Shown here piece by piece: positions 3,351 to 27,731 of a stretch of DNA of 64,000 bases (positions within the stretch are counted from its first letter, which is position 1; each line of letters starts with the position of its first letter). Source of the stretch: Cyanophora paradoxa CCMP329 (Eukaryota; Plantae; Glaucophyta); NCBI GenBank assembly GCA_004431415.1, contig QPMI01000555.1:1-64000 (forward strand), given 5' to 3'. The notes under the pieces were generated by a model. The model had not been told where the DNA came from. It did not search any database and saw only the letters and a list, made by a program, of their open reading frames with translations. Both the position numbers and the translations under genes were made by a program.

Positions 3351-3405
3351 AACTCTTCCCAAGTCCCAAGTCCCAAGTCCCAAGTCCCAAGTCCCAAGTC
3401 CCAGG
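3351..3405 (-). repeat. Telomere-like array 2: CC(TGGGACT)6TGGGAAGAGTT, inverted relative to array 1
   Basis: Repeat at 3358-3403. Similarity to array 1 continues ~55 nt further (GGCCCAGACTTTCTC..GGATC). Confidence 0.95.
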
Positions 3406-5377: not shown

Positions 5378-5432
5378 AACTCTTCCCAAGTCCCAAGTCC
5401 CAAGTCCCAAGTCCCAAGTCCCAAGTCCCAGG
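5378..5432 (-). repeat. Telomere-like array 3: CC(TGGGACT)6TGGGAAGAGTT
   Basis: Repeat at 5385-5430, same boundary sequences as arrays 1 and 2. Confidence 0.95.
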
Positions 5433-6471
5433 TCACATTTTTCTCCCATTTTGACTCGAGATTCTGACCAAGTCCAAATCCGGGCCCGGGATTCGAACCC
5501 TCGTTTTCGGTCGATTTCACGCGTGAAAACAGCACTTTTCGGCCTTTTCCGATTTTTCCTTTCTCGCGATCGCATTAATGCCCCCGATCTCGAAATCGCG
5601 ATCGAAAAGGGTCGCGATCGGGAGAAAATCGCGATCGCCAGGGTCGTGATCGCCGCGATCGCCAGCCTCGGAGGGGGTACCCCCACAGCTGTTGCGGCGG
5701 TTATAAGAACCTCCGCAATCCAAGCGTCACTTCCGAGTCTCGAGCTCTCGGAGTTGACTTTTCGCGTTTGCCCCATTGTTGGCCCTCATATATATTTAAA
5801 CGACCCCCCTACCTTCCCAAACGCACAGAAAATGACTGAAGATCCGAGAGAGAGTCTAGATCTAGACGATATCGATCTAAGTTGCAGATTGATCATGAGA
5901 ACTTTGAGAAGTGTTTTCTGTGGACTTCCGGGCCAGTTCCGGCTTATAAATTATAACACTTCCGGCGGCCGGCGGCGGGTTTTGGGGGACACTTGCAACT
6001 AAATTAAGTTGCAAGCCTTTTTGAAGTTGCACTGCGGCAACTGCCACTGGCCCACTGGCCTGCCACGGCCCACTAGTACTGGCCCGCACTGGGCCAAGCA
6101 GTGCCAATCAGTGTTGGGTAAAGTTTGCTCCCCCAAATTTGCCTTGAAAACTTTCTGCAAGCTTTGAAAAAGATTGCACCATAGAAAACATTCGAATTCC
6201 AAGCACCGCAAAAGCACTGTATTCCTTGGCAAATAAGCGTCTAAACAAGAGATATAAGCTTTACAATGATACCTGCCAGGCTGTGAGTTTCAGATTCAAA
6301 GTTTGCACGCGTTTAGTCTTGTTTTCAAGTTTGGCCTTTAGCTTCTTTTCAGGGTCGCCGAGAGGGGGGTACCCATCTGAAGGAGCCTCGGAGGCGACCT
6401 TCGCCCTCCTGAGTCCTGACACCCATCATATGCATGTAACTCTCAGTCTCTCAACTCTTTTTTTTTTTTTT

Positions 6472-6592
6472 CAGGATAGCCCAATTCTTGGGCGATGATG
6501 TTATTTTCAGTTAGCTAACTTCATCGTATGCACTACCGGTTCGGACTGGGCCGAACTCTGGGTCAGCTCATAACCTGTGGCCGCTACACAGG
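6472..6592 (-). other. Structured 3' tail: three short hairpins before the poly(A)
   Basis: GCCCAA-ttc-TTGGGC 6479-6493, GTTCGG-N6-CCGAAC 6539-6556, CCTGTG-N7-CACAGG 6574-6592. Confidence 0.55.
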
Positions 6593-7070
6593 GATAGGCG
6601 CTTCGACGCTAACTAGAAGCGTTCAGGGTGGGGAGAGCTTGGGCGGGGTGTCCTACTTGGGCTCGCGTCGGCGGTGCGTGGTCTGTTGGGGGGGTGGGGG
6701 GTGGGGTGGGTGGGGGGTAGTACAGGCCTAGGGCGGTTGCACATCCCCTATCTTTGGGCGTGAGGGGCGCGGGCGGGTGTCCCGGGAGCCGGATGGGGCT
6801 AGGTACGCAGGAGGGAGGTGAGCACGGGCTAAGTGGGGGCCCTGCGGGACCGGGGCTAAGGTGCGGGGCGAGTGGCGTGGGTGGCTTGAGCAGTGGTCGT
6901 GAGCGGGCGCCTGGCTTTGCTTCACAGAGCATACAGGACAGCTGAGTGTCTCACCCTTAAAAGGAGAGCGAGGCCGTAGGGCCGCTCTGGTACGACAGAG
7001 TGACTAAGGAGAAAGAAAGAAAGAAAAGGAGGTGGCCGGAGGCCTTAGTTCTAGGAAGATCCTAGGGCGT

Positions 7071-9234
7071 CTACGCCGCTGCATTGTCCTCCGCCGCGGC
7101 GCGGCGGCCTGCGAGGTAGGCCTCGACGGCGGCGGGCCGCCGATGGCCGCCGTGAGCTCGGTGAGGAGCTTCTGGGTGGCCTGGTAGTTGGCGAGCGTGA
7201 TGTTGGCCGGGGCGGGCCAGGGCGGGGCCGGGCCCGGGCGGGCGCGGGAGCGGCGATCGGCGCGGGGCGGCGGCGGCTGCCGCGGGGCGGCGGCGGCTGC
7301 CGCGGCGGCGGCGGCGGCGGGGTGGGGCGCGGGGGCAGCCGGGGCGGCGGGGGCGGCGGCGCCGCCCTTGCTCTTCTTGCGCGCGTCGGGCCCGAAGCGC
7401 TCGGTCGTGCGCTTGCGGGACTTGGCGGCGATCTCCGCCGCGATCTTGGCTGCCTCCTCGTTAGTCTTGCCCTCATTGAGGGCGCTGAGGCGGTTGAGCC
7501 GGCGGGCCGCGGAGGAGTGGCCTGGGCGGTACGAGGCGCGGCCGCCCACCCCGTTGGGGTAGTGGATGCGGTGCTCCGTGACGACCTTCGCGCTGGTCGC
7601 GGAGGCCGCCAGGGCCAGCGAGTCGGGGTAGAGCGACTGTCGGGCGGGTCTCTTGTGAGGGGGGGTATAGGGGCCCTCGAGGTCAGGGGAGGTACCGACC
7701 TCCTGGTCCTCGTCCTCGGAGTCGTCCGCGTCGAGCGCGGGCTTCACCTCCTTGCCGATGACGGCGATGTTGTCGCCATCGCGCTTGTACTTGTGGGGCT
7801 GCAGGGCCGTGAGGTTCACGACCTTGATCTTGCCGTCGAAGAGCTCGGGCTCGAGCCAAACCGCCTGCGAGGGCGGCGGTTTAACTTATTGCGCGCGCGC
7901 GGGGTGGCGCTATCTTTTAAGTTCCTCTTTGGGCCCCCACTGGGGCCCGGGTTTGTCCGGGGCGGACCTGGCACATGGCGGTGAGCGCGTCGTCCGTGTA
8001 GACGCCCTGGATGCTGCAAAAGATGCGGTAGGAGAGGCCCGCGGCTTGCTGCTCCGGGGTGAGGCCGGCGTACACCGCCTGACGGCTGGCAACCGAGAGG
8101 TCCTGGCAGATGCGGACCTACGTCCCGGCCCGGGTGCGTGTTTAGAGACTTCGCTTAATTGCACAGTTTACATAAGGCGTACTTTGAGCTTGCGGTTCGG
8201 GTTGCCGAGGTCGACTTCCACGGCGGCAAGGCAGCCTTGCGCGTTGGGGAAGCGGGCGCGCAGGTCGCGGTTCATGGCCATGGACGTCTCGATGTCGGTG
8301 AGGTGGATGAGGCCGACCTTCCGGAAGCGGCCGATGGCGTAGACGTCGGTCATGACGTCGCGGCACCGCTCGAGCCACCCGATCGCTTCGAGGGTCTTGT
8401 TCGCGATGACCTTGAGGTAGTCGGAGCGGAGTTCGCCGTCGTCCTCGAGGAGGAGGGGAAAACGGGTGAAGTCGACGTTGTCGTCGAACTTCATCAGCTT
8501 GTTGAACTGCGTGCACGAGCCCGGGGCCGTCGGTGAGTGAGGCACGGAGGCGGGTGGAGGGGCGCCGGTGCGCGCACCAGCTCCTTGTCGTAGAGGGTGG
8601 CCGTCGAGGCCGTGAGCGCGGCCATGATGAGCGTTTTCTTTGTCTTGTCCACCACTACTTTGCCGCGCTTGGTGACGCGGGTCGTGCAGCCGGCCGGCAG
8701 CGGCTGAGGCGCCGGCAGCGGTGCCGGTTCCGGCTCCTGCGGGTCCTCATCCTGCGACGAGTTCATATCGTGCAGTGGTTTGGTGCGGGGGCGGGACTTG
8801 CCTGGAGCTCGGTCTGCGTCGAGGGCGGCGCGGCGGCGGCCGCCTGCTTGGCCCGCGGTGAGGAGCGGCGAGCCGTCGACGAGCCCTTCGGGCGTCCACG
8901 GCCCTGTATATGCCGTTGTGAGTGCGGGGTGCGCGTGTGCGAGGGGTGCTGGGACGAGGTGAGGCACCTTAGACGTCGACGCGGAGCTGGAGGAGCTTGC
9001 GTCGGCGGGCGTCGCTGCCGGGGCGGCGACCTTGTCCTTCTGCTTCTGCTTCTCGACGGGCTTCGCGGGAGCCTGGAACACTTGGTTGGCGAGCCGGGGC
9101 GGCGACTTGGGCGGCGAGCTCGGGCGCGCGGCTGCGCTCGCTGCGGTGTTCTTCAGCGGCGCCGGAGCGGGGCCCGTGCTCAGAAAAGACGTGATCCGGC
9201 CCGCAGCGGCGGCGACGGCGAAGGCGGCGGCCAT
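7071..9234 (-). CDS. Six-exon AT-hook-containing protein (~600 aa) of unknown function
   Basis: Exons 9234-8968, 8903-8802, 8751-8578, 8506-8183, 8102-7968, 7864-7071. Introns of 64, 50 (GC-AG), 71, 80 and 103 nt, all phase 0. Splicing creates K|GRGRPKGS (AT-hook) and a globular core (FNKLMKFDD...RIFCSIQGVYTDDALTAMCQAVWLEPELFDGK). Probable 1-nt slip near 7135 gives ...AAVEAYLAGRRAAAEDNAAA*. Confidence 0.75.
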
Positions 9235-9375
9235 TGGCGTTAATCGATGGCGGTGGCGGGAATATGACGAGTGATCCCCGGTACGGGGGCCCCGGGGGAG
9301 ATTAGGGGCTTGGGCATGATTAGGTCCTGTGTACCCCGCTTGTGGGGGGGCTGAGGTTAGTTTGCAACGGGAGCG

Positions 9376-10161
9376 ATGTCGGATCAGCCCGCGGCTGTGC
9401 CCGGGGCGGCTCGCGCCGATGCTAAGCGCGGGCGGAGTGAGAGCGACTCCTCTGGGGAGGGGCCAGCGGCGAAGCGAGCGGTTGCTGGTTCGGAGCTCGA
9501 TCAGGTCGCGCACGGCGCCGTAGGTAGCGGGGCGACCGTGAGCGGCTTTGCGGACGATAGTGTTAGCGTCGGAGGAGATAGCGTGCAGTCCGCCGAGAGC
9601 GGGCCAGCGACGTTCCCGTTGTTGAGGACCCTCGGCGGCCTGTTGCGCGTCGCTGCTGCTATGTTCCGCGACGGAGTGGTGCGGGGGTATTTCTACGAGT
9701 TGCCTACGCCAGGTTGCGCTCAAGTGGCGAAGAAGAGTACGCTGGCGTTCTACGCCGTGCGCCGCGGCATCGTTCCCGGGATTTACTCTATCTGGTGCGC
9801 AGCACCTCCGCGCACGCTAGTCGTGCCCGATTTGGTGGGGGCTTATGACGTGGTACCGCCGGCGGTTCTGGCGGCGGCGTGGGCTCGGTGTTTGCAGGGA
9901 CAAGACCGCGACGTATCCGGGGCGGGAGTGCGCTCTGGCTCAGGTGTGGAGGGTGCCGGGCGTCCGGGGCTGTGATTCCCGGCGCTTCGTGACGCTTGAT
10001 CAGGCGATGGACTTCCTGGTGCGCCTAGCTGCGCAGTTGCGCCGGATCTGCATTCGCAGGCTGACTGCGGCTGGTTGCAGGAGGGCGATGGGACGGCTGA
10101 GAATGGGCTGGAGGCGATCCCGCACGAGCGGCCGGCGGGGCTGAAGTGCCCCTGGCAGTAG
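9376..10161 (+). CDS. Three-exon stand-alone viroplasmin / RNase H1 N-terminal (Cauli_VI) domain protein
   Basis: Exons 9376-9794, 9898-10018, 10081-10161; both introns GTGCGC...TGCAG. Spliced: FYAVRRGIVPGIYSIW|DK...ECALAQVWRVPG...RRFVTLDQAMDFL|EG..., matching FYAV..G..PGIY..W.EC..QV........F.T..EA..FL. Confidence 0.85.
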
Positions 10162-11229
10162 GGGTGCCGCCGCCGGTCAGTCGGCGTCCTCGGAGTCGGA
10201 CTCCATCGGCGGGTCAAGGAGGGGGCCCCGGGTTAGTGTAGCTTCGTTGCCAGAGCGGTGTATCGAGGCGATGAAGTCATCGGCGGTCCAGAGGCGCTGG
10301 CGCTGGGGCGCGGGCTCGGCGGGGGGGTCCTCGGGGTCAGTCTCTCAACTCTATATATATATATAGCTATAGCTAGAATTATGTCAGAACCGAAGGGAAT
10401 GCCGCAAGCAGCCGGTAGATCTTATATGATATTAATTACCCAGCGCAAACTTTCCGAACACTGGTGCCACTGGGCCAATTGCAAGATCTAGTCTCCATCA
10501 TCTAGAAGCACTGCCAACCGTTGAACCCTCAGGGCCTATATATCGTCCCTACTTAGGCTAATGACTCCCTAATAGTCCCTACCTAATAGTACCTATAGCT
10601 ATAGCTAGATTCTAGAGACGCCGGCCCGGCGGACCGACCGTCGGACGGTCTTTCGAAGTTCCGCAATTACTATAGACTATTTATAGTATGGTACAGTCGC
10701 TGTCAGTCGGGAGTAAATCGGGGTAAATCGGGATTAGCTCCATAGAGGCCTACCGGTTTCTCCCGGCCCCATTTCGTTTTTTGTATATATATTCTGTTGC
10801 TGGGCGGTGCAGGCGTTTTGTTTTTTGCAGGCGCCGGGCGGTGCCACTGCCACGGTGCGCATGCCAGGCGCCGGCAGCCGCCGCGGCCGGCGCCGCCGCG
10901 CGCCCGGCCCGCCGGCAGTGCCCGGCACTGCCCGGCAGGTCCGACGGTGCAGCCGCTGTACATGTCACCCGCTGAGCAGCCTGAGCAGGTCGACGTCGAC
11001 GCGAAGACGCCTGCAGCTGCAGCGCTGCAGCTGCGCAGCTGCTGGCTCCCGGGCCCCGGCGCGGGCCGGGCTTTGGGATCGTTCGTTCTCCCTAGGCCTG
11101 CTCTTCGTTCCCCGATTCTGCTTATGCAGCTCGTTGACGGTGACGCATCGATTTCAGAACCGCTGAGCGCAGCGCTGGCGCCGACCCCACGCGCGTGATT
11201 GAGCGGGGATGAGCCGGAACGCCAGATCC

Positions 11230-13499
11230 ATGGCAACGTCGGCGTCGGCCTCGCTTTTCTTCGGCACTCCCGTGTCGCTGGAGGTCGCAGTCGCCCACAT
11301 CCGCGCGGCAACGCGAGCAGCCGCGGCTGCGGCCGACGAGAGCTCGCGCGACGCGACCCGCAACGCAAGCCGCGGGTCCTCCGAAGATTCCTTCGACGCA
11401 TCGGACGCAGGAGAAGGTGCGCGAGCTCTCGCTCATCGATATCGTAAAGCACGGCCGGCGTCGGTCCGGTGCCGAGGCCTAGGGCGCGCGCGCTTTCACC
11501 GGACCCGGGATGCCTTTCGAGACCTGCAGCTGCTTTTTATAAGCGTTTGCTTTATTTGATGCGAGGTGACAGTCGACGTCGCCGCGCGCGCGCAGGCGCG
11601 GGGGGCTGGCTCGCCCTCAACATCGACGAGGCGGAGGCCGTCCTCGCCGCCGCCGCCGCCGCCGCCGCCGTCCCAGCCTCCCTCGGGCCCCTCACCCTCT
11701 GGGAGGTGCGCCCGCATGAGCGGAAATAATGCACTCCGCCCTGCTGTTTCGATCTCTAGTTTTGCAGCTCGTTGATTTAATTTGTAGGAAATTCGAAAGA
11801 GCTCGCTTATTTCTTGATATCGATCTGTCAACGTTTCCGGGATCCTTTCTTTCTGAGTGCAGTCCAACGGATATCACGGATACGTATCCTTCTTCAAACT
11901 GTTTCTGCCCTGTTTCCTCGGCCGTGTTGCCTTAAGCTTCCTGTGCCCGATTTGTGCTCCTCTTCTCTCAGAGTCTCTTGATATCTATACCTGCCCGATG
12001 TACATGTAGCTGTGCCCGATGCGATATCTTCTCTTGTCCCCCTCGATCGGTCTCCGTTCAACGGTTGTTCCTGTGCTTTTCTGCAGCTGTCTCCAGCGAT
12101 TTCCGGGCTGTCAGTACTAGTCCTTTCCTCGCCCGACAACTCTATAGCTATTTCGTTTAGCTGCACCGCTGCGAACTCGAGCTCCGAATCCCTTCAATTT
12201 CATGTCCTCTTTTCTTTCAAATTTCCCATCGGACGATCGCGGTCGATGCTCAGTCTGGCCGTCGACGGTTGCAATTGCGCAGCCGCTGAGCTGCCGGGCT
12301 GCGTGCAGCGTTGTTTCGGTTTCCTTTTCCTTTTCTACGCCCTCCAAGCCATTCCAGCATGCGTAGACCTCGCGATCAGTACCGGTGCTTCTCCGTCCTA
12401 AGAATTCGAATTTTAGAAGAACTCGTACTTTTCGCGTCTTAAAACGAGCTCGAGAGCTATATTTATGATTAGACACGCTAGCTATATATAAAGCGGTCGA
12501 GCTAGCGCTTCGGTTTCGACCGTCGGATGCCTTGGTGTGAGAGCGTTCGCTGAGTTGCCGTCGGCGTCGCGCAGGAATTCGAGGGCGGCGGCGGCGGCGG
12601 CGGCGGCGCGGACGACGCCGAAGCCGACGGCAGCGCGGGCGGCGCGCCGCCCGATCGCGAGCCGGCGCCCGCGCAGCTGCAGGCGCAGCCGCATCCACGG
12701 CCAGCTGCGGACGCTCGTGTCGGAACCGAAGGTGCGCGTGGATGCACGCCCCGCCCTCGGCTCGCGCTCGTGCCAGCACTCGGCTCGGCCAACGTGCCCG
12801 GCGGTACCGCGCGCAGCGGCAGGCGCAGGGGGCGTTGCGGCGCCGCGCTGTCGCGAAGGCGAGTGGGGCAGCTCCGGATCCTCGAGCCCCGCCCTGGTCA
12901 GTGCGATCGCAATCGGCGTCCCAGGTCAACCTTTTAGGGGACCATCGCGAGATCTAATCTAAGAGCGGCGCCGGCGCCTCGGATTCGAATTCGATCGATG
13001 TCGCGAGCCGCCGCTGGTCACAGATCGGCGAGAAGCGGTGGCGCGCCGACGTCCCCGCGCGTACAATTAATTCACTTCAGCTTGATAATTATTATTATAA
13101 TTAGCGCCCTTGCACCCCGACCTACCGCTGCGGCTCCAGCCCAATGCGACCGAGCGCTTCTGACGCCTCTGTGTCTCCCCAGGCGTACGTCGCGTTTAAG
13201 CAGCACGCGGCCTTCCTCCTGGAGCCCGCTCCCCAACCGGCGCCCGCCCCCGCCGCCTCAGGCCCCGGCCGCGGCCGCGGCCGCATGGCCCACTGCCACG
13301 TCCCCGCCCCCGTCCTCAGGGTCCTCTCCCCGCTCCCGCTTTCTTTCCCACCGCATCGGCGCCTCGTGATCATGATCGCGTGCGAGGGTGACAGATCGAC
13401 GAGGCGGCGGCGCGGGAGGCCCTCGCCGGCGTCTGCCGCGCCCTCGGCATCCCCCTCGACCCGCCCTCCATCGGCTGGCACCTCCTCCTCCGCCGCTAG
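11230..13499 (+). CDS. Orphan 4-exon gene A, copy 1 (~180 aa)
   Basis: MATSASASLFFGTPV...DAGE|GAGGWLALNIDEAEAVL...LTLWE|AYVAFKQHAAFLLEP...PAPVLR|IDEAAAREALAGVCRALGIPLDPPSIGWHLLLRR*. Splice sites conserved in all four copies; intron 2 is ~1.5 kb. Confidence 0.6.
11720..12930 (-). pseudogene. Degenerate antisense gene relic nested in intron 2 of gene A (also ~16.6-17.8, 21.65-22.9, 25.9-27.1 kb)
   Basis: Related peptides (LEFLRDADGNSANALTPRHP; DREVYACWNGLE; QLNEIDLELSDEERTS; LHPERKETLTD) occur in every unit but with different frameshifts. Confidence 0.5.
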
Positions 13500-14567: not shown

Positions 14568-16138
14568 GGGCGGCCGCGGACGGTGGGCCGGATCGCCCGG
14601 CTCGCTCAGCTCCTCGCTCCACTTGTTTCTTTCTTTTCGATTGAGCTTCGGAATGTTCCCATCGAGCTTAAGCTTCGGAACGACTTACCCAATTATTAAT
14701 AGAGGCTGCAATTGTACGGCGCTAGATCGTCCAGGGCGGCCGGGCGGGTTCTAGAGGGTCTCCGGCGCTCTTCAGGACTCCCGGAGTTGTCTCGGAGTAC
14801 TAATAGCTCGGGGTAGCTCGGAGTATCCACCCGCGTCCCCGCCGGGCCGTTCTTGTCCCGGCCAGAACTAGCTGTCCCGGGAGAGGCCCGGAGAGCCAGC
14901 CGCTGAGCTGCCGCAGTGCAGGTGATTGCGCGACGTCGACCGCATGGACGCAACGTCGCAACCGCGCCCGTGCGGCCGCACCTCTGAATTTGATTGCGAG
15001 AATTTGATCAAATAGCCTCGCATGTTTTATATGATCGACCGTCGGACTCTCTGATGATCATGATCATGATCAGACTCTCACTGAGTCACTGAGTCAGTGA
15101 TATCATGATCATGTATGATCGATATACTGTATCACCCATGGCCATGGCCAGCGCTAGCTGCTCGTAGCTTTTTAAACTCATGATCAGTGACTTGCAAATT
15201 GGGATCCGGATCGATCGATCGCGACACGCATATGTCGACATGGACATCGGACCTCCTCGTCGAGTCCTCGATGCGATGGAGGATCATGATCATGGAGCCC
15301 ACGAGTCGACACTTACTCGACAGTGATCACGAGCCTGACACGAGGAGCCTCGGAGCCCCGTACGCGTACGCGTGCGATGGAGGCTGTAGCTATGACGCTG
15401 CTAGGTACAGTCGCTGCTAGGTCCATAGGGTGTGTGGGCCCTGAATATCCTCTACCCCCCGCTCCACAAAGGGGCTGGGGCCAGGCTGGGGATCGAGACT
15501 CGCGAGTACGTTCACAATCCCGGCCCGTTTCTCTCCTCTCCGGAATCCGGATCCCATCCCAGCCGCGGAGTCCCCGCGCGGCCGCGGAGAATCGCCGGAG
15601 AGTCGGCGCGGCGACTCCCCGCGCGGAGAGTCGGACTCGAGCGACGGAGACTCCCCGGAGGGCCGGAGAGTCACTGTGTGACTCACTGAGTCACTGAGCG
15701 AGTCTGAGACTCTGAGTCCCCTTTAGACTTCCCTAGGCCTCGGGCCTCGGCCCTCGAGTCCCTTAACTTAGGCTCCTTAGCTCGACTTCCCTCCGAGCGG
15801 CCTCTCGATCTAACGGGTTTTAACCTCAGTAAGCTCCCATAGAGGCATATCTTCCCTTTTTCGCTGGATGACGCGAGCGTGGCCGCGGCAGGTCACGATC
15901 GACGACTCGACGTGCAGTCGACGCGTCGACGTCTGCAGCTGCAGCCGGCCTGCAGCTGCGCAGCTGGCTCCCGGCGCGGGCCGGGTTGCACTGTGGGATC
16001 GTTCGTTCTCCGTGCTCTTCATTCCTCGATTCTGCTTAAGCAGCTCATTGACGGCGACGCATCGATTTCAGAGGCGCTGATCGCAGCGCCGACCCTGCGC
16101 GCGTGATCGAGGTCGGGATGAGCCGGCACGCCAGATCC

Positions 16139-18348
16139 ATGGCAACGTCGGCGTCGACCTCGCTTTTCTTCGGCGCTCCCGTCTCGCTGGAGGTCGCGGT
16201 CGCCCACATCCGCGCGGCAACGCGAGCTGCCGCGGCCGCGGCCGACGAGAACTCGCGCGACGCGACCCGCAACGCAAGCCGCGGGTCCTCTGAAGATTCC
16301 TTCGACGCATCGGACGCAGGAGAAGGTGCGCGCGCTCTCGCTCATCGATATCGTTAAGCTCGATCGGCCTCGGTCCGGCGCCGAGGGCGCGCGCTTGCCC
16401 CGGATCCGGATGTCTTTCGAGACCTGCATGCGACTGCTTCTTCCGCTTTAATTTGTCACGTTGCCGTCCGCGCGCAGGCGCGGGGGGCTGGCTCGCCCTC
16501 AACATCGACGAGGCAGAGGCCGTCCTCGCCGCCGCCGCCGCCGCCGCCGCCGTCCCCGCCTCCCTCGGGCCCCTCACCCTCTGGGAGGTGCGCCCGCATG
16601 CATAGAAATAATGGTCTCCGCCCTGCTGTTCCGATTTCTTGAGTTTCGCCGCTCGTTTATTTGATCTGTAGGATCCGGAAATGGGAGCTCGAGCTCGCTG
16701 ATTTCTTGATCTGTCAACGTTTCCTTTCTTTCTGGGTGCAGGGCATCCTTCTTCAATATGCTGCTGCCCTGTTTCGTCGACCGTGTTGCCTTCCAATTCC
16801 ATTCGTTCTCCTCTTCTCTCTTTCGACATCTGCCCGATGTACATGAGCCCGATGCGATGACTTCTTTTCTCCCTCGATCGGTCTCCGTTGTTCCTGTGCT
16901 TTTCTGCAGCTGCCTCGAGCGATTTTCGGGCTGTCAGTACGTATACTAGTCCTTTCCTCGTCCGACAACTCTAGGTCTATTTCGTTTAGCTGCACCGCTT
17001 CGAACTCCAGCTCCGGATCCCTTCAATTTCCTTTCCTCTATTCGAATTTCCCATCGGACGATCGCGGTCGATGCTCAGTCGGGCCGTCGACGGTTGCGGC
17101 CCCGCCCGCGGCCCACCCCGAGCCTCGCCAGGCCCGAGCTGCGCGCAGCGTTGTTTCGGTTTCCTTTTCCTTTTCTGCGGCCTCCAAGCCATTCCAGCAT
17201 GCGTATACCTCGCGATCAGTACCGCTGCTTCTCGGTCCTCCTAAGAATTCGAATTTTCGAACAACTCGTACTTTTCGCGTCGTAGACCGAACTCGAGAGC
17301 TTTGTAGAAGGCCGTGGCTAGACGCGCTAGCGTTTGAGCTTCGGTTTCGAACATCGGATGCCTTGGTGTGAGAGCATTCGCTGAGTTGCCGTCGGCGTCG
17401 CGCAGGAATTCGAGGTCGGCGGCGGCGGCGGCGGCGGCGAGGACGACGCCGAAGCCGACGGCAGCGCGGGCGGCGCGCCGCCCGATCGCGAGCCGGCGCC
17501 CGCGCAGCTGCAGCTGCAGGCGCAGCCGCATCCACGGCCAGCTGCGGACGCTCGCGCCGGAACCGAAGGTGCGCGCGGATGCACGCCCCCTCGGCTCGCG
17601 ATCGCGCTGGCGCTCGGCTCGGCCAACGTGCCCGGCGGTACCGCGCGCAGCGGCAGGCGCAGGGGGCGTTGCGGCGCCGCGCTGTCGCGAAGGCGAGTGG
17701 GGCAGCTCCGGATCCGGATCCTCGAGCCCCGTCCTGGTCAGTGCGATCGCAGTCGGCGTCCCAGGGCAAGCTTGAAGCTTTAAGGGGACTATCGCGAGAT
17801 CTAATTTATAAGAGTGGCGCCGGCGCCTCGGATTCGAATTCGATCGCGAGCTACGAGCCGCCGCTGGATCCGGACACGGATCGGAGAGAAGCGATGGCGC
17901 GCCGACGTCCCCGCGCGTCCTAATAATAATTATAATTATAATTAGCTCCCTTGCACCCCGAGCTAGCGCTGCGGCGCCAGCCCAATGCGACCGAGCGCCT
18001 CTGACGCCTCTGTGCCTCTGCGCAGGCGTACGTGGCGTTTAAGCAGCACGCGGCCTTCCTCCTGGAGCCGGCGCCCGATCGCGAACCGGCGCCCGTCCCC
18101 GGTGCTTCGAATTCGAGCTCCGGCCGCGGCCGCGGCCGCATGGCCCACTGCCACGTCCCCGCCCCCGTCCTCAGGGTCCTCTCCCCGCTCCCGCTTTCTT
18201 TCCCACCGCATCGGCGCCTCGTGATCGCGTGCGGGGGCGGCAGATCGACGAGGCGGCGGCGCGGGCGGCCCTCGCCGGCGTCTGCCGCGCCCTCGTCATC
18301 CCCCTCGACCCGCCCTCCATCGGCTGGCACCTCCTCCTCCGCCGCTAG
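16139..18348 (+). CDS. Orphan gene A, copy 2
   Basis: Same exon structure as copy 1. Confidence 0.55.
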
Positions 18349-20150: not shown

Positions 20151-21178
20151 GGGCGGGGGTGGCCATGGGCCGGCTCGCCCGGCTCGCTCAGCTCAGCGGC
20201 TCCTCCGAGGCTCGCGATCGCTTGATCGCGACTTGTTTCTCTCTTTTCAATGAAACTCCCCATATATGCACGGCCAATATCAATTGCATTGAATTTCGCA
20301 ACCCGTCGCCGGGCCGTCGGCGCCGTCGCTAACAAACCCGCGGCAGCCACGCGCGGGCCGCCGCCGGCGCGGCCGGGTCGCCGCCGGCCCGCACGCAGCG
20401 CAGCGCGCGCCGCGCGCACGCGCACTGCGCAGCGCGCCTGAGCCAGTGAGCGCGGCCGCAACTTGCAATTGCAAGTTGCAATCGGCAATATTATATTAAT
20501 GGTCGGCGCCCGGCCGGCACGGCCGCAAGTTGCAATTGGCATTTAATGTCTTACTGAGAACAGTAATTTAATACAGATCGTGATCATGATCATGACTCAG
20601 TGATCACGAGGAGCCCCGTGCGATGGAAAGCTTCAGTCGCGTCGATCGGGTACCCCAATTTATTTTCCATTTCGCGACGACTGTAGCCCCCCAAATTACT
20701 TCCCCCGGGCCCCATGCCGGCGCCATGGCCATGGCGCCGGCCAAATTAAAGATGTAGATTTAGATCGACCTCGAGTCACCGAGTTCGCACGCCGATTCTC
20801 TCCGATTCCGGGCCCCGCGGCCGGCCGCGGAGGCTGCGGAGCCCCCTAGGCCTCTAGATCTCGATCTAAGCTCCCAAAGCCTCCCATATGCATATCTTCT
20901 GTGATGACGCGATCGAGCGCAGCAGGTCGTCGTGTCGACGTCTGCAGCGGCAGCTGCGCAGCTGGCGCCCGGCGCCCGGCGGCCCATTTCGACTAAACTC
21001 TGCAATTGGGATCGTTCGTTCTCCCTGCTCGCTCTTATTTCCCAGCCCCGCTTCTGCTTATGCAGCACTTCCTTCATTGACGGCGACGCATCGATTTCAG
21101 AGCCGCTGATCGCAGCGCCGACATCGCGCGCGCGCGTGATTGAGGTCGGGGATGAGCCGGCCGCGGCACGCCAGATCC

Positions 21179-23438
21179 ATGGCAGCGTCGGCGTCGGCCT
21201 CGCTTTTCTTCGGCGCTCCCGTGTCGCTGGAGGTCGCGGTCGCCCACATCCGCGCGGCGACGCGAGCTGCCGCGGCTGCGGCCGACGAGAGCTCGCGCGA
21301 CGCGACCCGCAACGCAAGCCGCGGATCCTCTGATGATTCCTTCGACGCATCGGACGCAGGAGAAGGTGCGCGCGCTCTCGCTTATCGATATCGTTAAGCT
21401 CGATCGGCCTCGGTCCGGCGCCGAGGGCGCGCGCTTGCCCCGGATCCGGATGTCTTTCGAGAACTGCATGCGACTGCTTCTTCCGCTTTAACTTGTCACG
21501 TTGCCGCCCGCGCGCAGGGGCGGGGGGCTGGCTCGCCCTCAACATGGACGAGGCGGAGGCCGTCCTCGCCGCCGCCGCCGCCGCCGCCGCCGTCCCCGCC
21601 TCCCTCGGGCCCCTCACCCTCTGGGAGGTGCGCCCGCGCGCACGAGCAGAAATAATGTTCTCCGCCTTGCCATTTCGATTTCTGGAGTTTCGCGGCTCGT
21701 TTATTTGATTTGTGGGATCCGGAAATGGGAGCTCGAACTCGCTGATTTTTCGATCTGTCAACGTTTCCTTTCTTTCTGGGTGCAGCCGCAGGGCATCCTT
21801 CTTCAATATGTTGCTGCCCTGTTCCTCGATCGTGTTGCCTTCCTGTGCCCAATTCTTCTCCTCTTTTCTCTTGACATCTGCCCGATTTATATGAGCCCGA
21901 TGCGATCTCTTCTCTTCTCCCTCGATCAATCCGGATCCGTTCTTCCCGCGGCCGTGCTTTTTTGCAGCTGCCTCGAGCGATTTTTGGGCTGTCAGTACTA
22001 TAGCTAGTCCTTTTCTCGTCCGACTAGTCCTTTTCTCGTCCGACAACTCTAGGTCTATTTCGTTTAGCTGCGCCGCTTCGAACTTAAGCTCGGAATCCCT
22101 TCAATTTCCTTTCCTCTTTTCGAATTCTTTCAAATTTCCCATCGGACGATCGCGGTCGATGCTCAATCTGGTCGTCGACGGTTGCGGCCCCGCCCGCGGC
22201 CCACCCCGAGCCACGCCCCGCGGCCAGGCGCCGGCTCGAGCTGCGTGCAGCGTTTTTTCGGTTTCCTTTTCCTTTTTCTGAGGCCTCCGAGCCATTCCAG
22301 CATGCGTATACCTCGCGATCAGCGCCGCTGCTTCTAGATCTCGGTCCTCCTAAGAATTCGCATTTTCGAACAACTCGTACTTCCGCTTTTCGCGTCGTAG
22401 ACCGAGCCTCGGAGCTCGAGAGCTACATTTATGCCTAGACGCGCTAGCTATACAGCTATATATATAGCGGTCGAGCTTCGGTTTCGACCGTCGGATGCCT
22501 TGGTGTGAGAGCGTTCGCTGAGTTGCCGTCGGCGTCGCGCAGGAATTCGAGGGCGGCGGCGGCGGCGGCGGCGGCGAGGACGACGCCGAAGCCGACGGCA
22601 GCGCGGGCGGCGCGCCGCCCGATCGCGAGCCGGCGCCCGCACGGGCGCAGCCGCATCCACGGCCAGCTGCGGACGCTCGCGCCGGAACCGAAGGTGCGCG
22701 CGGATGCACGCCCCGCCCTCGGCTCGCGCTCGTGCCAGCGCTCGGCTCGGCCAACGTGCCCGGCGGTATCGCGCGCAGCGGCAGGCGGAGCGGGTGATGC
22801 GGCGCCGCGCTGTCGCGAAGGCGAGTGGGGCAGCTCCGGATCCTCGAGCTCGAGCCCCGCCCTGGTCAGTGCGATCGCAATCGGGGACGATTGCGAGATC
22901 TAAGAGTGGCCCCGGCGCCGGCGCCTCGCCTCGGATTCGAATTCGATCGCGAGCTACGAGCCGCCGCTGGTCACAGATCGGCGAGAAGCGGTGGCGCGTC
23001 GGCGTCCAATTAATTCACTTAACTTAGTAAGCTTAATAATTAGCTCCCGTAAGCTTGCACCCCGATCGAGCTGCGGCGCCGGCGCAATGCGACCGAGCGC
23101 CTCTGACGCCTCCACGCCTCTGCGCAGGCGTACGTGGCGTTCAAGCAGCACGCGGCCTTCCTCCTGGAGCCGGCCCCCGACCCGGCGCCCGCCCCCGCCG
23201 CCTCAGGCCCCGGCCGCGGCCGCGGCCGCATGGCCCACTGCCACGTCCCCGCCCCCGTCCTCAGGGTCCTCTCCCCGCTCCCGCTTTCTTTCCCACCGCA
23301 TCGGCGCCTCGTGATCGCGTGCGGGGGCGGCAGATCGACGAGGCGGCGGCGCGGGCGGCCCTCGCCGGCGTCTGCCGCGCCCTCGTCATCCCCCTCGACC
23401 CGCCCTCCATCGGCTGGCACCTCCTCCTCCGCCGCTAG
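21179..23438 (+). CDS. Orphan gene A, copy 3
   Basis: Same exon structure as copy 1. Confidence 0.55.
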
Positions 23439-24410: not shown

Positions 24411-25452
24411 GGGCGGGGGTGGCCATGGGCCGGCTCGCCCGCGGCCGGCTCGCTCAGCTCAGCGGCTCCTCGCGATCGCTTGATCGCGACTTGTTTCTCT
24501 CTTTTCAATGAAACTCCCCATGTATGCACGGCCAATATCAATTGCATTGAATTTCGCAACCCGTCGCCGGGCCGTCGGCGCCGTCGCTAACATACCCGCG
24601 GCAGCCACGCGCGGGCCGCGGCCGGGCGCGAACCGCGCCGGGTCGCCGCCGGCCCGCACGCAGCGCAGCGCGCGCACGCGCACTGCGCAGCGCGGCCGCA
24701 ACTTGCAATTGCAAGTTGCAATCGGCAATATTAATGGTCGCGATCGGCGCCCGGCCGGCACGGCCGCAAGTTGCAATTGGCAAGTTGCAAGGGAAATTAC
24801 AGAATCATGATTAGAACACTGAGAACAGTAATACAGATCGTGATCATGACTCAGTGATCACGAGGAGCCCCGTGCGATGGAAAGCTTCAGTCGCGTCGAT
24901 CGGGTACCCCAATTTATTTTCCATTTCGCGACGACTGTAGCCCCCCGGCCCAAATTACTTCCCCCGGGGCCGGCGCCATGGCCATGGCGCCGGCCAAATT
25001 AAAGATGTAGATTTAGATCGACCTCGAGTCACCGAGTTCGCACGCCGATTCTCTCCGATTCCGGGCCCCGCGGCCGGCCGCGGAGGCTGCGGAGCCCCCT
25101 AGGCCTCTAGATCTAGATCTCGATCTAAGCTCCCAAAGCCTCCCATATGCATATCTTCTGTGATGACGCGATCGAGCGCAGCAGGTCGACGTGAGCGCAG
25201 CACGTCGACGTGTCGACGTCTGCAGCTGCAGCTGCGCAGCTGGCGCCCGGCGCCCGGCGGCCCATTTCGACTAAACTCTGCAATTGGGATCGTTCGTTCT
25301 CCCTGCTCGCTCTTATTTCCCGGCCCCGATTCTGCTTATGCAGCACTTCATTGACGGCGACGCATCGATTTCAGAGGCGCTGATCGCAGCGCCGACATCG
25401 CGCGCGCGCGTGATTGAGGTCGGGGATGAGCCGGCCGCGGCACTCCAGATCC

Positions 25453-27731
25453 ATGGCAGCGTCGGCGTCGGCCTCGCTTTTCTTCGGCGCTCCCGTGTCG
25501 CTGGAGGTCGCTGTCGCCCACATCCGCGCGGCGACGCGAGCTGCCGCGGCCGCGGCCGACGAGAACTCGCGCGACGCGACCCGCAACTCAAGCCGCGGAT
25601 CCTCTGATGATTCCTTCGACGCATCGGACGCAGGAGAAGGTGCGCGCGCTCTCGCTTATCGATATCGTTAAGCTCGATCGGCCTCGGTCCGGCGCCGAGG
25701 GCGCGCGCTTGCCCCGGATCCGGATGTCTTTCGAGACCTGCATGCGACTGCTTCTTCCGCTTTAATTTGTCACGTTGCCGCCCGCGCGCAGGCGCGGGGG
25801 GCTGGCTCGCCCTCAACATGGACGAGGCAGAGGCCGTCCTCGCCGCCGCCGCCGCCGCCGCCGCCCTCCCCGCCTCCCTCGGGCCCCTCACCCTCTGGGA
25901 GGTGCGCCCGCATGAGCGGAAATAATGTTCTCCGCCCTGCTGTTTCGATTTCTGGAGTTTCGCAGCTCGTTTATTTGATTTGTGAGATCCGGAAATGGGA
26001 GCTCGAACTCGATGATTTTTTGATCTGTCAACTTTTCCTTCCTTTCTGGGTGCAGTCCGACGGATATCACGGATACGTATCCTTCTTCAAGCACTGTTTC
26101 CTCGACCGTGTTGCCTTCCTGTGCCCAATTCTTTTCCTCTTTTCTCTTGACATCTGCCCGATGTACATGAGCCCGATGCGATCTCTTCTCTTCTCCCTCG
26201 ATCAATCCGGATCGATATCCATTCTTCCCGTGCTTTTTCTCAGCTGCCTCGAGCGATTTTCGGGCTGTCAGTACTAGTCCTTTTCTCGTCTCGTCTCGTC
26301 CGCGCCGGCCCCGCTTCGAACTTGAGCTCGGGATCCCTTCGATTTCCTTTCCTCTTTTCTTTCGAATTTCCCATCGGACGATCGCGGTCGATGCTCAGTC
26401 TGGCCGTCGACGGTTGCGGCCCCGCCCGCGGCCCACCCCGAGCCAGGTCAGGCGCCGGCTCGAGCTGCGTGCAGCGTTGTTTCGGCTTCCTCTTCCTTTT
26501 CTGCGGCCTCCAAGCCATTCCAGCATGCGTATACCTCGCGATCAGCACCGCTGCTTCTCGGTCCTCCTAAGAATTCTAATTTTCGAACATCTCACGATCG
26601 TACTTTTCGCGTCGTAGACCGAACTCGAGAGCTGTGTAGAAGGCCGTGGCTAGACGCGCTAGCGTTTGAGCTTCGGTTTCGAACATCGGATGCCTTGGTG
26701 TGAGAGCATTCGCTGAGTTGCCGTCGGCGTCGCGCAGGAATTCGAGGGCGGCGGCGGCGGCGGTGGCGGCGAGGACGACGCCGAAGCCAACGGCAGCGCG
26801 GGCGGCGCGCCGCCCGATCGCGAGCCGGCGCCCGCGCAGCTGCAGCTGCAGGCGCAGCCGCACCCACGGCCAGCTGCGGACGCTCGCGCCGGAACCGAAG
26901 GTGCGCGCGGATGCACGCCCCGCCCTCGCCCTCGGCTCGCGATAGGGCCAGCGCTCGGCTCGACCAACGTGCCCGGCGGTACTACGGTATCGCGCGCAGC
27001 GGCAGGCGCAGGGGGCGTTGCGGCGCCGCGCTGTCGCGAAGGAGAGTGGGGCAGCTCCGGATCATCGAGCTCCGCCCTGGTCAGTGCGATATCGATCGGC
27101 GTCCCGGGTCAAGCAAGCTTAAGCTTTAAGGGGACTACCGCGAGATCTAATTTATAAGAGTGGCGCCGGCGCCTCGGATTCGAATTCGATCGCGAGCTAC
27201 GAGCCGCCGCTGGTCGCGGATCGGCGAGAAGCGGTGGCGCGCCGACGTCCCCGCGGCCGCGCGTCCAATTAATTCACTTGAGCTTAATGATCAGCTCCCT
27301 TGCACCCCGGCCCGAGCTAGCGCTGCGGCGCCAGCTGCAGCCCAATGTGACCGATCTCGAGCGCCTCTGACGCCGACGGCCGCGGGGCGCGGGGGCCCCC
27401 TCTGCGCAGGTGTACGTGGCGTTTAAGCAGCACGCGGCCTTCCTCCTGGAGCCGGCGCCCGACCCGGCGCCCGCCCCCGCCGCCTCGAGCTCCGGCCGCG
27501 GCCGCGGCCGCATGGCCCACTGCCACGTCCCCGCCCCCGTCCTCAGGGTCCTCTCCCCGCTCGCGCTTTCTTCAAATTCCCGGCGCCTCGGCGCCTCGTG
27601 ATCATGACCACGTGCGGGGGCGGCAGATCGACGAGGCGGCGGCGCGGGCGGCCCTCGCCGGCGTCTGCCGCGCCCTCGGCATCCCCCTCGACCCGCCCTC
27701 CATCGGCTGGCACCTCCTCCTCCGCCCCTAG
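25453..27731 (+). CDS. Orphan gene A, copy 4
   Basis: Same exon structure, ends WHLLLRP*. Confidence 0.55.

Follow-up and report, generated by a model that had tools for sequence, protein, structure and literature searches.

How a stretch of DNA that bears the marks of reverse transcription can hold genes with their introns intact is the question raised by an insertion in Cyanophora paradoxa CCMP329. The insertion occupies positions 6459-10336 of contig QPMI01000555.1, of which positions 1 to 64,000 were analyzed (hereafter the window). Our findings suggest that 6459-10336 is probably a 5′-truncated copy of a C. paradoxa retroelement family without long terminal repeats (non-LTR) and of the long interspersed nuclear element (LINE) type, formed by target-primed reverse transcription (TPRT) of an unspliced read-through RNA. 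A first-pass annotation made from the sequence alone had proposed TPRT of unspliced RNA for this locus, and the features on which it was based, including a target-site duplication (TSD), a poly(A) tail, 5′ truncation, and the retention of introns in the DNA, were all recovered in the present analysis.

The insert was found to be bounded by an exact 16-bp direct repeat, TCAGTCTCTCAACTCT, which has exactly two matches in the whole 64-kb window, one at each end (Table 1). When the window was shuffled 100 times, the expected number of 16-mer repeats was 0, one tolerated mismatch included. A run of 14 T residues (6458-6471) adjoins the left copy of this TSD, with the first T possibly being the last base of the repeat; the insert is thus 3,878 bp in length on the minus strand, with its 5′ end at 10336 and its tail reading from 6471 to 6459. 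The insert also differs from its flanks in GC content (~70% vs. ~55%), and its right junction is crossed by a 2,148-nt DNA contig (8255-10402) with zero differences from the window. Other than the 16-mer, no terminal direct or inverted repeats were found for the insert, and 6000-10800 had no match in Rfam at E ≤ 1, hammerhead ribozymes included. Within the window, neither a second copy of the element (BLASTN of the element and TBLASTN of the exon translations) nor a paralogous empty site (BLASTN of the flanks and of the reconstructed empty site) was detected. The three terminal hairpins described earlier do exist; however, the folding of the 188-nt tail is not significantly stronger than that of its shuffles (z = −1.42).

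The insert carries two genes that are placed head to head, as first annotated, with divergent start codons. The gene on the same strand as the poly(A) tail, referred to here as the orphan gene, had been given six exons and five introns. Its strand and the intact state of its introns were upheld, but the GC content at third codon positions (GC3) favors seven exons and six introns. The exons have GC3 values of 0.86-0.96, and the six-intron model is preferred because the read-through frame of the candidate first intron has a GC3 of only 0.57. In this model, one intron (8801-8752) would be of the GC-AG type. Splicing was examined in sequencing run data, all of which were contigs and not reads, such that the starts and ends of RNAs are not mappable from them. 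RNA contigs from two studies (X17 and X19) skip exactly 7637-7699, and one X19 contig skips 7864-7966; these stretches are the last two predicted introns of the orphan gene. In the public paralogues P0001 and P0003, we found the junctions KLK/VRICQ, MCQ/AVWLE, and DQE/SLYPD (exons 4/5, 5/6, and 6/7, respectively), which add intron 8118-8182 to those backed by RNA. Based on these RNA contigs and paralogous proteins, the last three introns on the sense strand are spliced. No contig joint that removes an intron was present in the DNA run. A processed retrocopy was rejected, as the DNA contains introns 7637-7699, 7865-7967, and 8118-8182, which the RNA or protein models show to be spliced out. An additional RNA contig (X20 record 23, 488 nt) was observed to leave exon 5 and enter the intron sequence at 8134-8182 in a diverged form; it represents either DNA carry-over or RNA transcribed from a paralogous copy and left unspliced.

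The sense mRNA was also found to end inside the element. An X20 RNA contig (record 22) has nine untemplated T residues directly ahead of 6899, a point at which no A-run exists in the genome; therefore, the mRNA is cleaved and polyadenylated at ~6899. This site is ~170 nt past the family stop codon, with another 440 nt remaining to the element's own end. This finding agrees with the earlier proposal that the spliced mRNA is distinct from the read-through RNA that is copied, in that the mRNAs of the carried gene end at the internal site. The equivalent of the family stop codon is located at 7073-7071. The window is without one G near 7133, and the last ~22 codons of the orphan gene are thereby frameshifted; this G is present in most of the DNA contigs and all of the RNA contigs, and restores the family C-terminus. 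At position 7083 the window has an A, while all DNA and RNA contigs have a G. Both discrepancies may represent true mutations of the window copy or errors made in assembling a GC-rich stretch that is multi-copy.

The antisense gene is represented by the public model P0008 (EukProt EP00741 Cyanophora paradoxa tig00021116_g18405), which is 100% identical to the spliced plus-strand product and uses precisely the two introns predicted in the first-pass annotation. This published model was generated by Augustus/BRAKER trained on RNA-seq (PMC6704402). Overall, three of the predicted sense introns and both antisense introns are backed by RNA contigs or public models, but for the two or three upstream sense introns the evidence is GC3. 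P0008 has a complete RNase H1 N-terminal domain of the hybrid-binding (Cauli_VI) type (PF01693; E = 4.7e-7; score of 30.4 bits, cut-off 21; profile positions 2-44 of 44). Three further loci for this gene were identified in the public proteome, including (i) P0009, with two identical loci at ~88% identity in the domain; and (ii) P0007, at 59% identity; each has exon junctions as in P0008. The 141-bp spacer between the two start codons is, by its head-to-head geometry, a candidate bidirectional internal promoter.

The orphan protein was searched exon by exon, with natural public proteins used where a spliced protein was needed. No Pfam match was found for any of the exon pieces (GIY-YIG, Transposase_22, RRM, and zinc knuckle were absent), and when 1.8 billion representative proteins were searched with exon 4 by phmmer, the matches were limited to a single Cyanophora paralogue and a spurious repeat protein. 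No match was detected for the low-complexity N-terminal 219 residues in a word-index search or for the protein in sequence searches of the PDB, and feature searches of the ESM Atlas gave scores ≤0.83 or no usable match. The AlphaFold2 model of P0001, built on a shallow alignment, had a predicted local distance difference test score of 38 and was unusable.

We next considered whether the insert belongs to a family, as the earlier annotation had favored over a single event. Depth was estimated by summing the contigs of one DNA run, in which the insertion is present, and is to be read as rough values (Table 1). The depth rises in steps from the single-copy level of the flanks and the 5′ half of the insert to ~20 times this level in the tail, the ~150-nt terminal module. 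The DNA contigs part from the window copy at 6516 and 6611, and a 1,138-nt RNA contig is common with the element only over 6473-6544; the tail is likewise common to otherwise unrelated transcripts or elements. Five paralogues of the orphan gene were found in the public proteome, with homology that starts at varied points (mid-exon 4, mid-exon 5, and exon 7 in the remaining three). These starts and the depth gradient, which fit copies with a common 3′ end and variable 5′ ends, were read from proteins and contigs and not from the DNA ends or TSDs of other copies. The insert has the standing of a multi-copy family member, with several copies sharing the 3′ half as anticipated, but this does not extend upstream of ~8400, where no relative at ≥90% identity was found in the DNA run. 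Among the exonic differences between copies, 12 of 17 were synonymous and 5 of 17 were non-synonymous (binomial p = 3e-4 vs. 28% expected), which indicates from sequence comparison that the carried orphan gene is under purifying selection. Together, the paralogues, the depth gradient, and the substitutions are consistent with a family of retroelements that is often truncated at the 5′ end and has its carried gene under selection.

The 5′ end of the insert provided an indirect link to a longer element. An open frame starts at 10335 and runs for 52 codons before a TGA at 10179-10177, in agreement with the earlier proposal of a 5′ end that lies mid-ORF (open reading frame) with a stop near 10180-10210. 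This remnant, which contains WTADDFIASIHR, opens the insert and is part of neither carried gene. Its GC3 of 0.85 and GC content at second codon positions (GC2) of 0.54 are the signature of the verified exons, a pattern that the other two frames do not have. In addition, the public model P0005 (tig00020572_g11553) is chimeric: a fragment of reverse transcriptase (RT) is followed, with nothing between them and on the same strand, by the orphan gene's last exon. The RT fragment has human L1 ORF2p as its best PDB match (E = 3e-11; L1-type) and is broken just before the next conserved motif. P0005 may have arisen by nested insertion or from an element with an internal deletion. Based on the coding signature of the remnant and the chimeric P0005, full-length members of the family may encode an RT/endonuclease upstream.

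Several results weigh against a LINE-type family copied from unspliced RNA. The first-pass annotation had noted that no RT is visible in this copy, and indeed none was found in the insert or anywhere else in the 64-kb window. The 52-codon remnant has no Pfam match, and P0005 could alternatively be a nested insertion or an artefact of gene modeling. Relatives of 8405-10336 at ≥90% identity were absent from the DNA run, and no close source element was seen despite the perfect TSD and pure A tail; either the source copy has disappeared, or its divergence is greater than would be judged from the young look of the ends. Between the spliced RNA contigs and the window copy there are 3-7 differing letters per ~120, and the variants are those of P0001; the contigs therefore derive from paralogues and not from the window copy. 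Finally, neither a homologue nor a confident fold was detected for the orphan protein, which showed no similarity to an L1 ORF1p/Gag-like chaperone in Pfam, the PDB, or the Atlas; "ORF1-like" therefore describes its position only.

Of the other explanations, the most probable is a non-autonomous chimeric retroposon, in which read-through or a template switch added the 3′ tail of a LINE to a host gene pair that is now mobilized in trans by a LINE, with no copy having an RT of its own. The absence of RT from the insert is as expected, the sharing of the tail with unrelated transcripts or elements resembles that between LINEs and short interspersed nuclear elements (SINEs), and both proteins are unlike known retroelement proteins. 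However, the 5′ end of the insert lies in a coding-type frame that belongs to neither gene, P0005 links an L1-type RT with the last exon, and purifying selection among dispersed copies is what would be expected for functions encoded by an element; we thus regard the chimeric retroposon as unlikely. A one-off event, either a single 3′ transduction by read-through or a host pre-mRNA reverse-transcribed once, would agree with 8405-10336 being single copy at ≥90% identity in the DNA run, but it was rejected as very improbable since the 3′ 1.9 kb is found in several copies with differing 5′ starts and no fewer than three additional loci have the hybrid-binding gene with its introns in common. A DNA-level event (segmental duplication, filler DNA at a double-strand break, or a DNA transposon), with the TSD and T-run arising by chance or microhomology, would readily leave introns intact but is scarcely credible, and a DNA transposon in particular was rejected, given the TPRT signature of an exact 16-bp repeat, an A-run at the junction, a repeated tail, and a 3′-to-5′ copy gradient, and the lack of terminal inverted repeats and of hammerhead or other Rfam motifs.

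Returning to a LINE-type family, its 3′ part would consist of the end of a long upstream ORF, the antisense hybrid-binding gene, the sense intron-rich orphan gene, a spacer, and the ~150-nt tail. We propose that transcription of a full-length element proceeds across its 3′ genes, and that RNA which is neither spliced nor cut at 6899 would reach the tail, presumably the part recognized by the RT, and be reverse-transcribed at the nicked target (...AACTCT/ATATAT, plus strand). In the window copy, synthesis would have halted early, with only the last 52 codons of the upstream ORF copied. The carried genes would be expressed separately, probably from the 141-bp spacer, with transcripts that are spliced and a sense mRNA that ends at 6899. 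In this proposal, the introns would be retained because a spliced mRNA without the tail would not serve as a template, and only tail-bearing unspliced RNA would be copied. The orphan protein may, by its position, be an ORF1-type RNA partner of the element, and the hybrid-binding protein may act on the RNA:cDNA hybrid, as suggested by its Cauli_VI domain. Taken as a whole, we put forward only tentatively, as a possibility short of probable, a LINE family in which the upstream ORF1 is replaced by two genes behind ORF2 that have an internal bidirectional promoter and are spliced and polyadenylated inside the element, with only the unspliced read-through RNA that reaches the tail being copied.

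Table 1. Features of the insertion and its surroundings in the window, with rough DNA depth (summed contigs of one DNA run) and its multiple of the single-copy level
Feature	Positions	Strand	Basis or remark	Depth
TSD, left copy, 16 bp	6443-6458	none	exact repeat	
Element poly(A) tail, A13 (A14 counting last repeat T)	6459-6471	minus	direct reading	
3′ terminal tail module, last ~150 nt	6472-6611	minus	~20 genome equivalents; common to otherwise unrelated transcripts/elements	~2,000 (~20x)
C-rich spacer, read-through RNA only	6612-6898	minus	between poly(A) site ~6899 and tail	
3′ part upstream of tail	6632 to ~8400			240-1,370 (2.5-14x)
Internal cleavage/polyadenylation site, sense mRNA	6899-6900	minus	X20 contig, untemplated T9	
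Orphan multi-exon gene	7007-9234	minus	ATG at 9234; "ORF1-like" by position only	
Orphan gene exons	9234-8968, 8903-8802 (uncertain), 8751-8578, 8506-8183, 8117-7968, 7864-7700, 7636-7007	minus	junctions, GC3	
Flanks and 5′ half of insert	flanks, 8405-10336			~95-107 (~1x)
Spacer between divergent start codons, 141 bp	9235-9375	none	ATG 9234 minus, ATG 9376 plus	
Stand-alone RNase H1 N-terminal (hybrid-binding, Cauli_VI) domain gene	9376-10161	plus	public model P0008, PF01693	
Hybrid-binding gene exons	9376-9794, 9898-10018, 10081-10161	plus	P0008	
Hybrid-binding gene introns	9795-9897, 10019-10080	plus	P0008	
52-codon 3′ remnant of upstream ORF and stop, 5′-truncated	10177-10335	minus	open frame, GC3/GC2 pattern	
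TSD, right copy, 16 bp	10337-10352	none	exact repeat	

The surroundings of the insert are themselves repetitive. The left flank at 5450-5843 is a high-copy repeat with a contig depth of ~40-70x the single-copy level in the DNA run, and GCGATCGC palindromes are dense within it at 5560-5665. Upstream of the insertion are three perfect 7-nt arrays, of (TGGGACT)n and the complement (TCCCAAG)n, at 2871-2931, 3357-3403, and 5384-5434. To the right of the insertion are four ~1-kb units of ~80% identity that are spaced ~5 kb apart (10995-11970, 15917-16820, 21006-21870, and 25202-26146); when the flanks were compared with the window by BLASTN, only the right flank from 10995 onward was repeated, at 80%. 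The four units have the look of a tandemly arranged family of minus-strand ORFs that are unannotated and lack a match in Pfam, and Pfam analysis of ten neighboring ORFs was uninformative.

LINEs account for 2.47% of the C. paradoxa genome (PMC6704402). Our literature searches found no published description of a LINE of this kind in Cyanophora or other organisms, and the element was therefore compared with known systems. It resembles the LINEs of the L1/Tx1 type with an apurinic endonuclease in (i) the long TSD, 3′ poly(A), and 5′ truncation; and (ii) the tail shared with dependent retroposons and the excess of 3′ parts over 5′ parts. Classical LINEs, however, have ORF1 before ORF2 and no spliceosomal introns, whereas the Cyanophora element has two genes with about eight introns in total downstream of a long ORF, one of them antisense, and the poly(A) site of the sense gene is internal. 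Penelope-like elements are similar in that spliceosomal introns are kept after retrotransposition, which has been described as "highly unusual among retroelements" (PMC8557442). These elements differ in their pseudo-LTRs, their GIY-YIG nuclease, the hammerhead ribozymes that are often present, and their lack of poly(A)-type ends, while the Cyanophora element has a poly(A) tail and a 16-bp TSD, lacks terminal repeats and a ribozyme, and has an L1-like sequence as its only linked RT fragment. A Penelope-like element was rejected for this locus, as no pseudo-LTRs or other terminal repeats, no Rfam ribozyme (E ≤ 1), and no GIY-YIG domain in the Pfam scans were found. LINE-mediated retrocopies and 3′ transductions likewise have non-LINE coding sequence carried by LINE machinery, with L1 3′ transductions seldom exceeding 1-3 kb (PMC6431247). 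Retrocopies are intronless and, like these transductions, one-off, in contrast to the Cyanophora unit, which keeps its introns, is multi-copy, and is under purifying selection in its coding sequence. Terminons and other giant retroelements are also RT elements with several accessory genes beyond the RT (reviewed in PMC6431247); however, terminons are based on Athena Penelope-like elements, are telomere-associated, span tens of kb, and have hammerhead motifs at their ends.

The likeness to retroviruses and caulimoviruses lies in the separate roles of an RNA that replicates unspliced and of processed mRNAs, and that to the P6 viroplasmin of cauliflower mosaic virus lies in the Cauli_VI/RNase H1 N-terminal domain of the antisense gene. 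The Cyanophora element is distinct from these viruses in having no LTRs, capsid, protease, or integrase and in its integration by TPRT, and its hybrid-binding domain stands alone, without an RNase H or the remainder of P6. A LINE of the poly(A)/TSD type that retains about six sense introns through independent insertions poses the problem of how its template RNA escapes the spliceosome, for which a candidate rule is that only RNA ignoring the internal poly(A) site carries the tail needed by the RT. In a deep-branching alga, such a LINE would also carry a stand-alone protein that binds RNA/DNA hybrids, together with an orphan protein on which selection acts. If true, this arrangement would place the genomic/subgenomic RNA split of retroviruses in a non-LTR element and would account for the survival of six sense introns through each round of copying.

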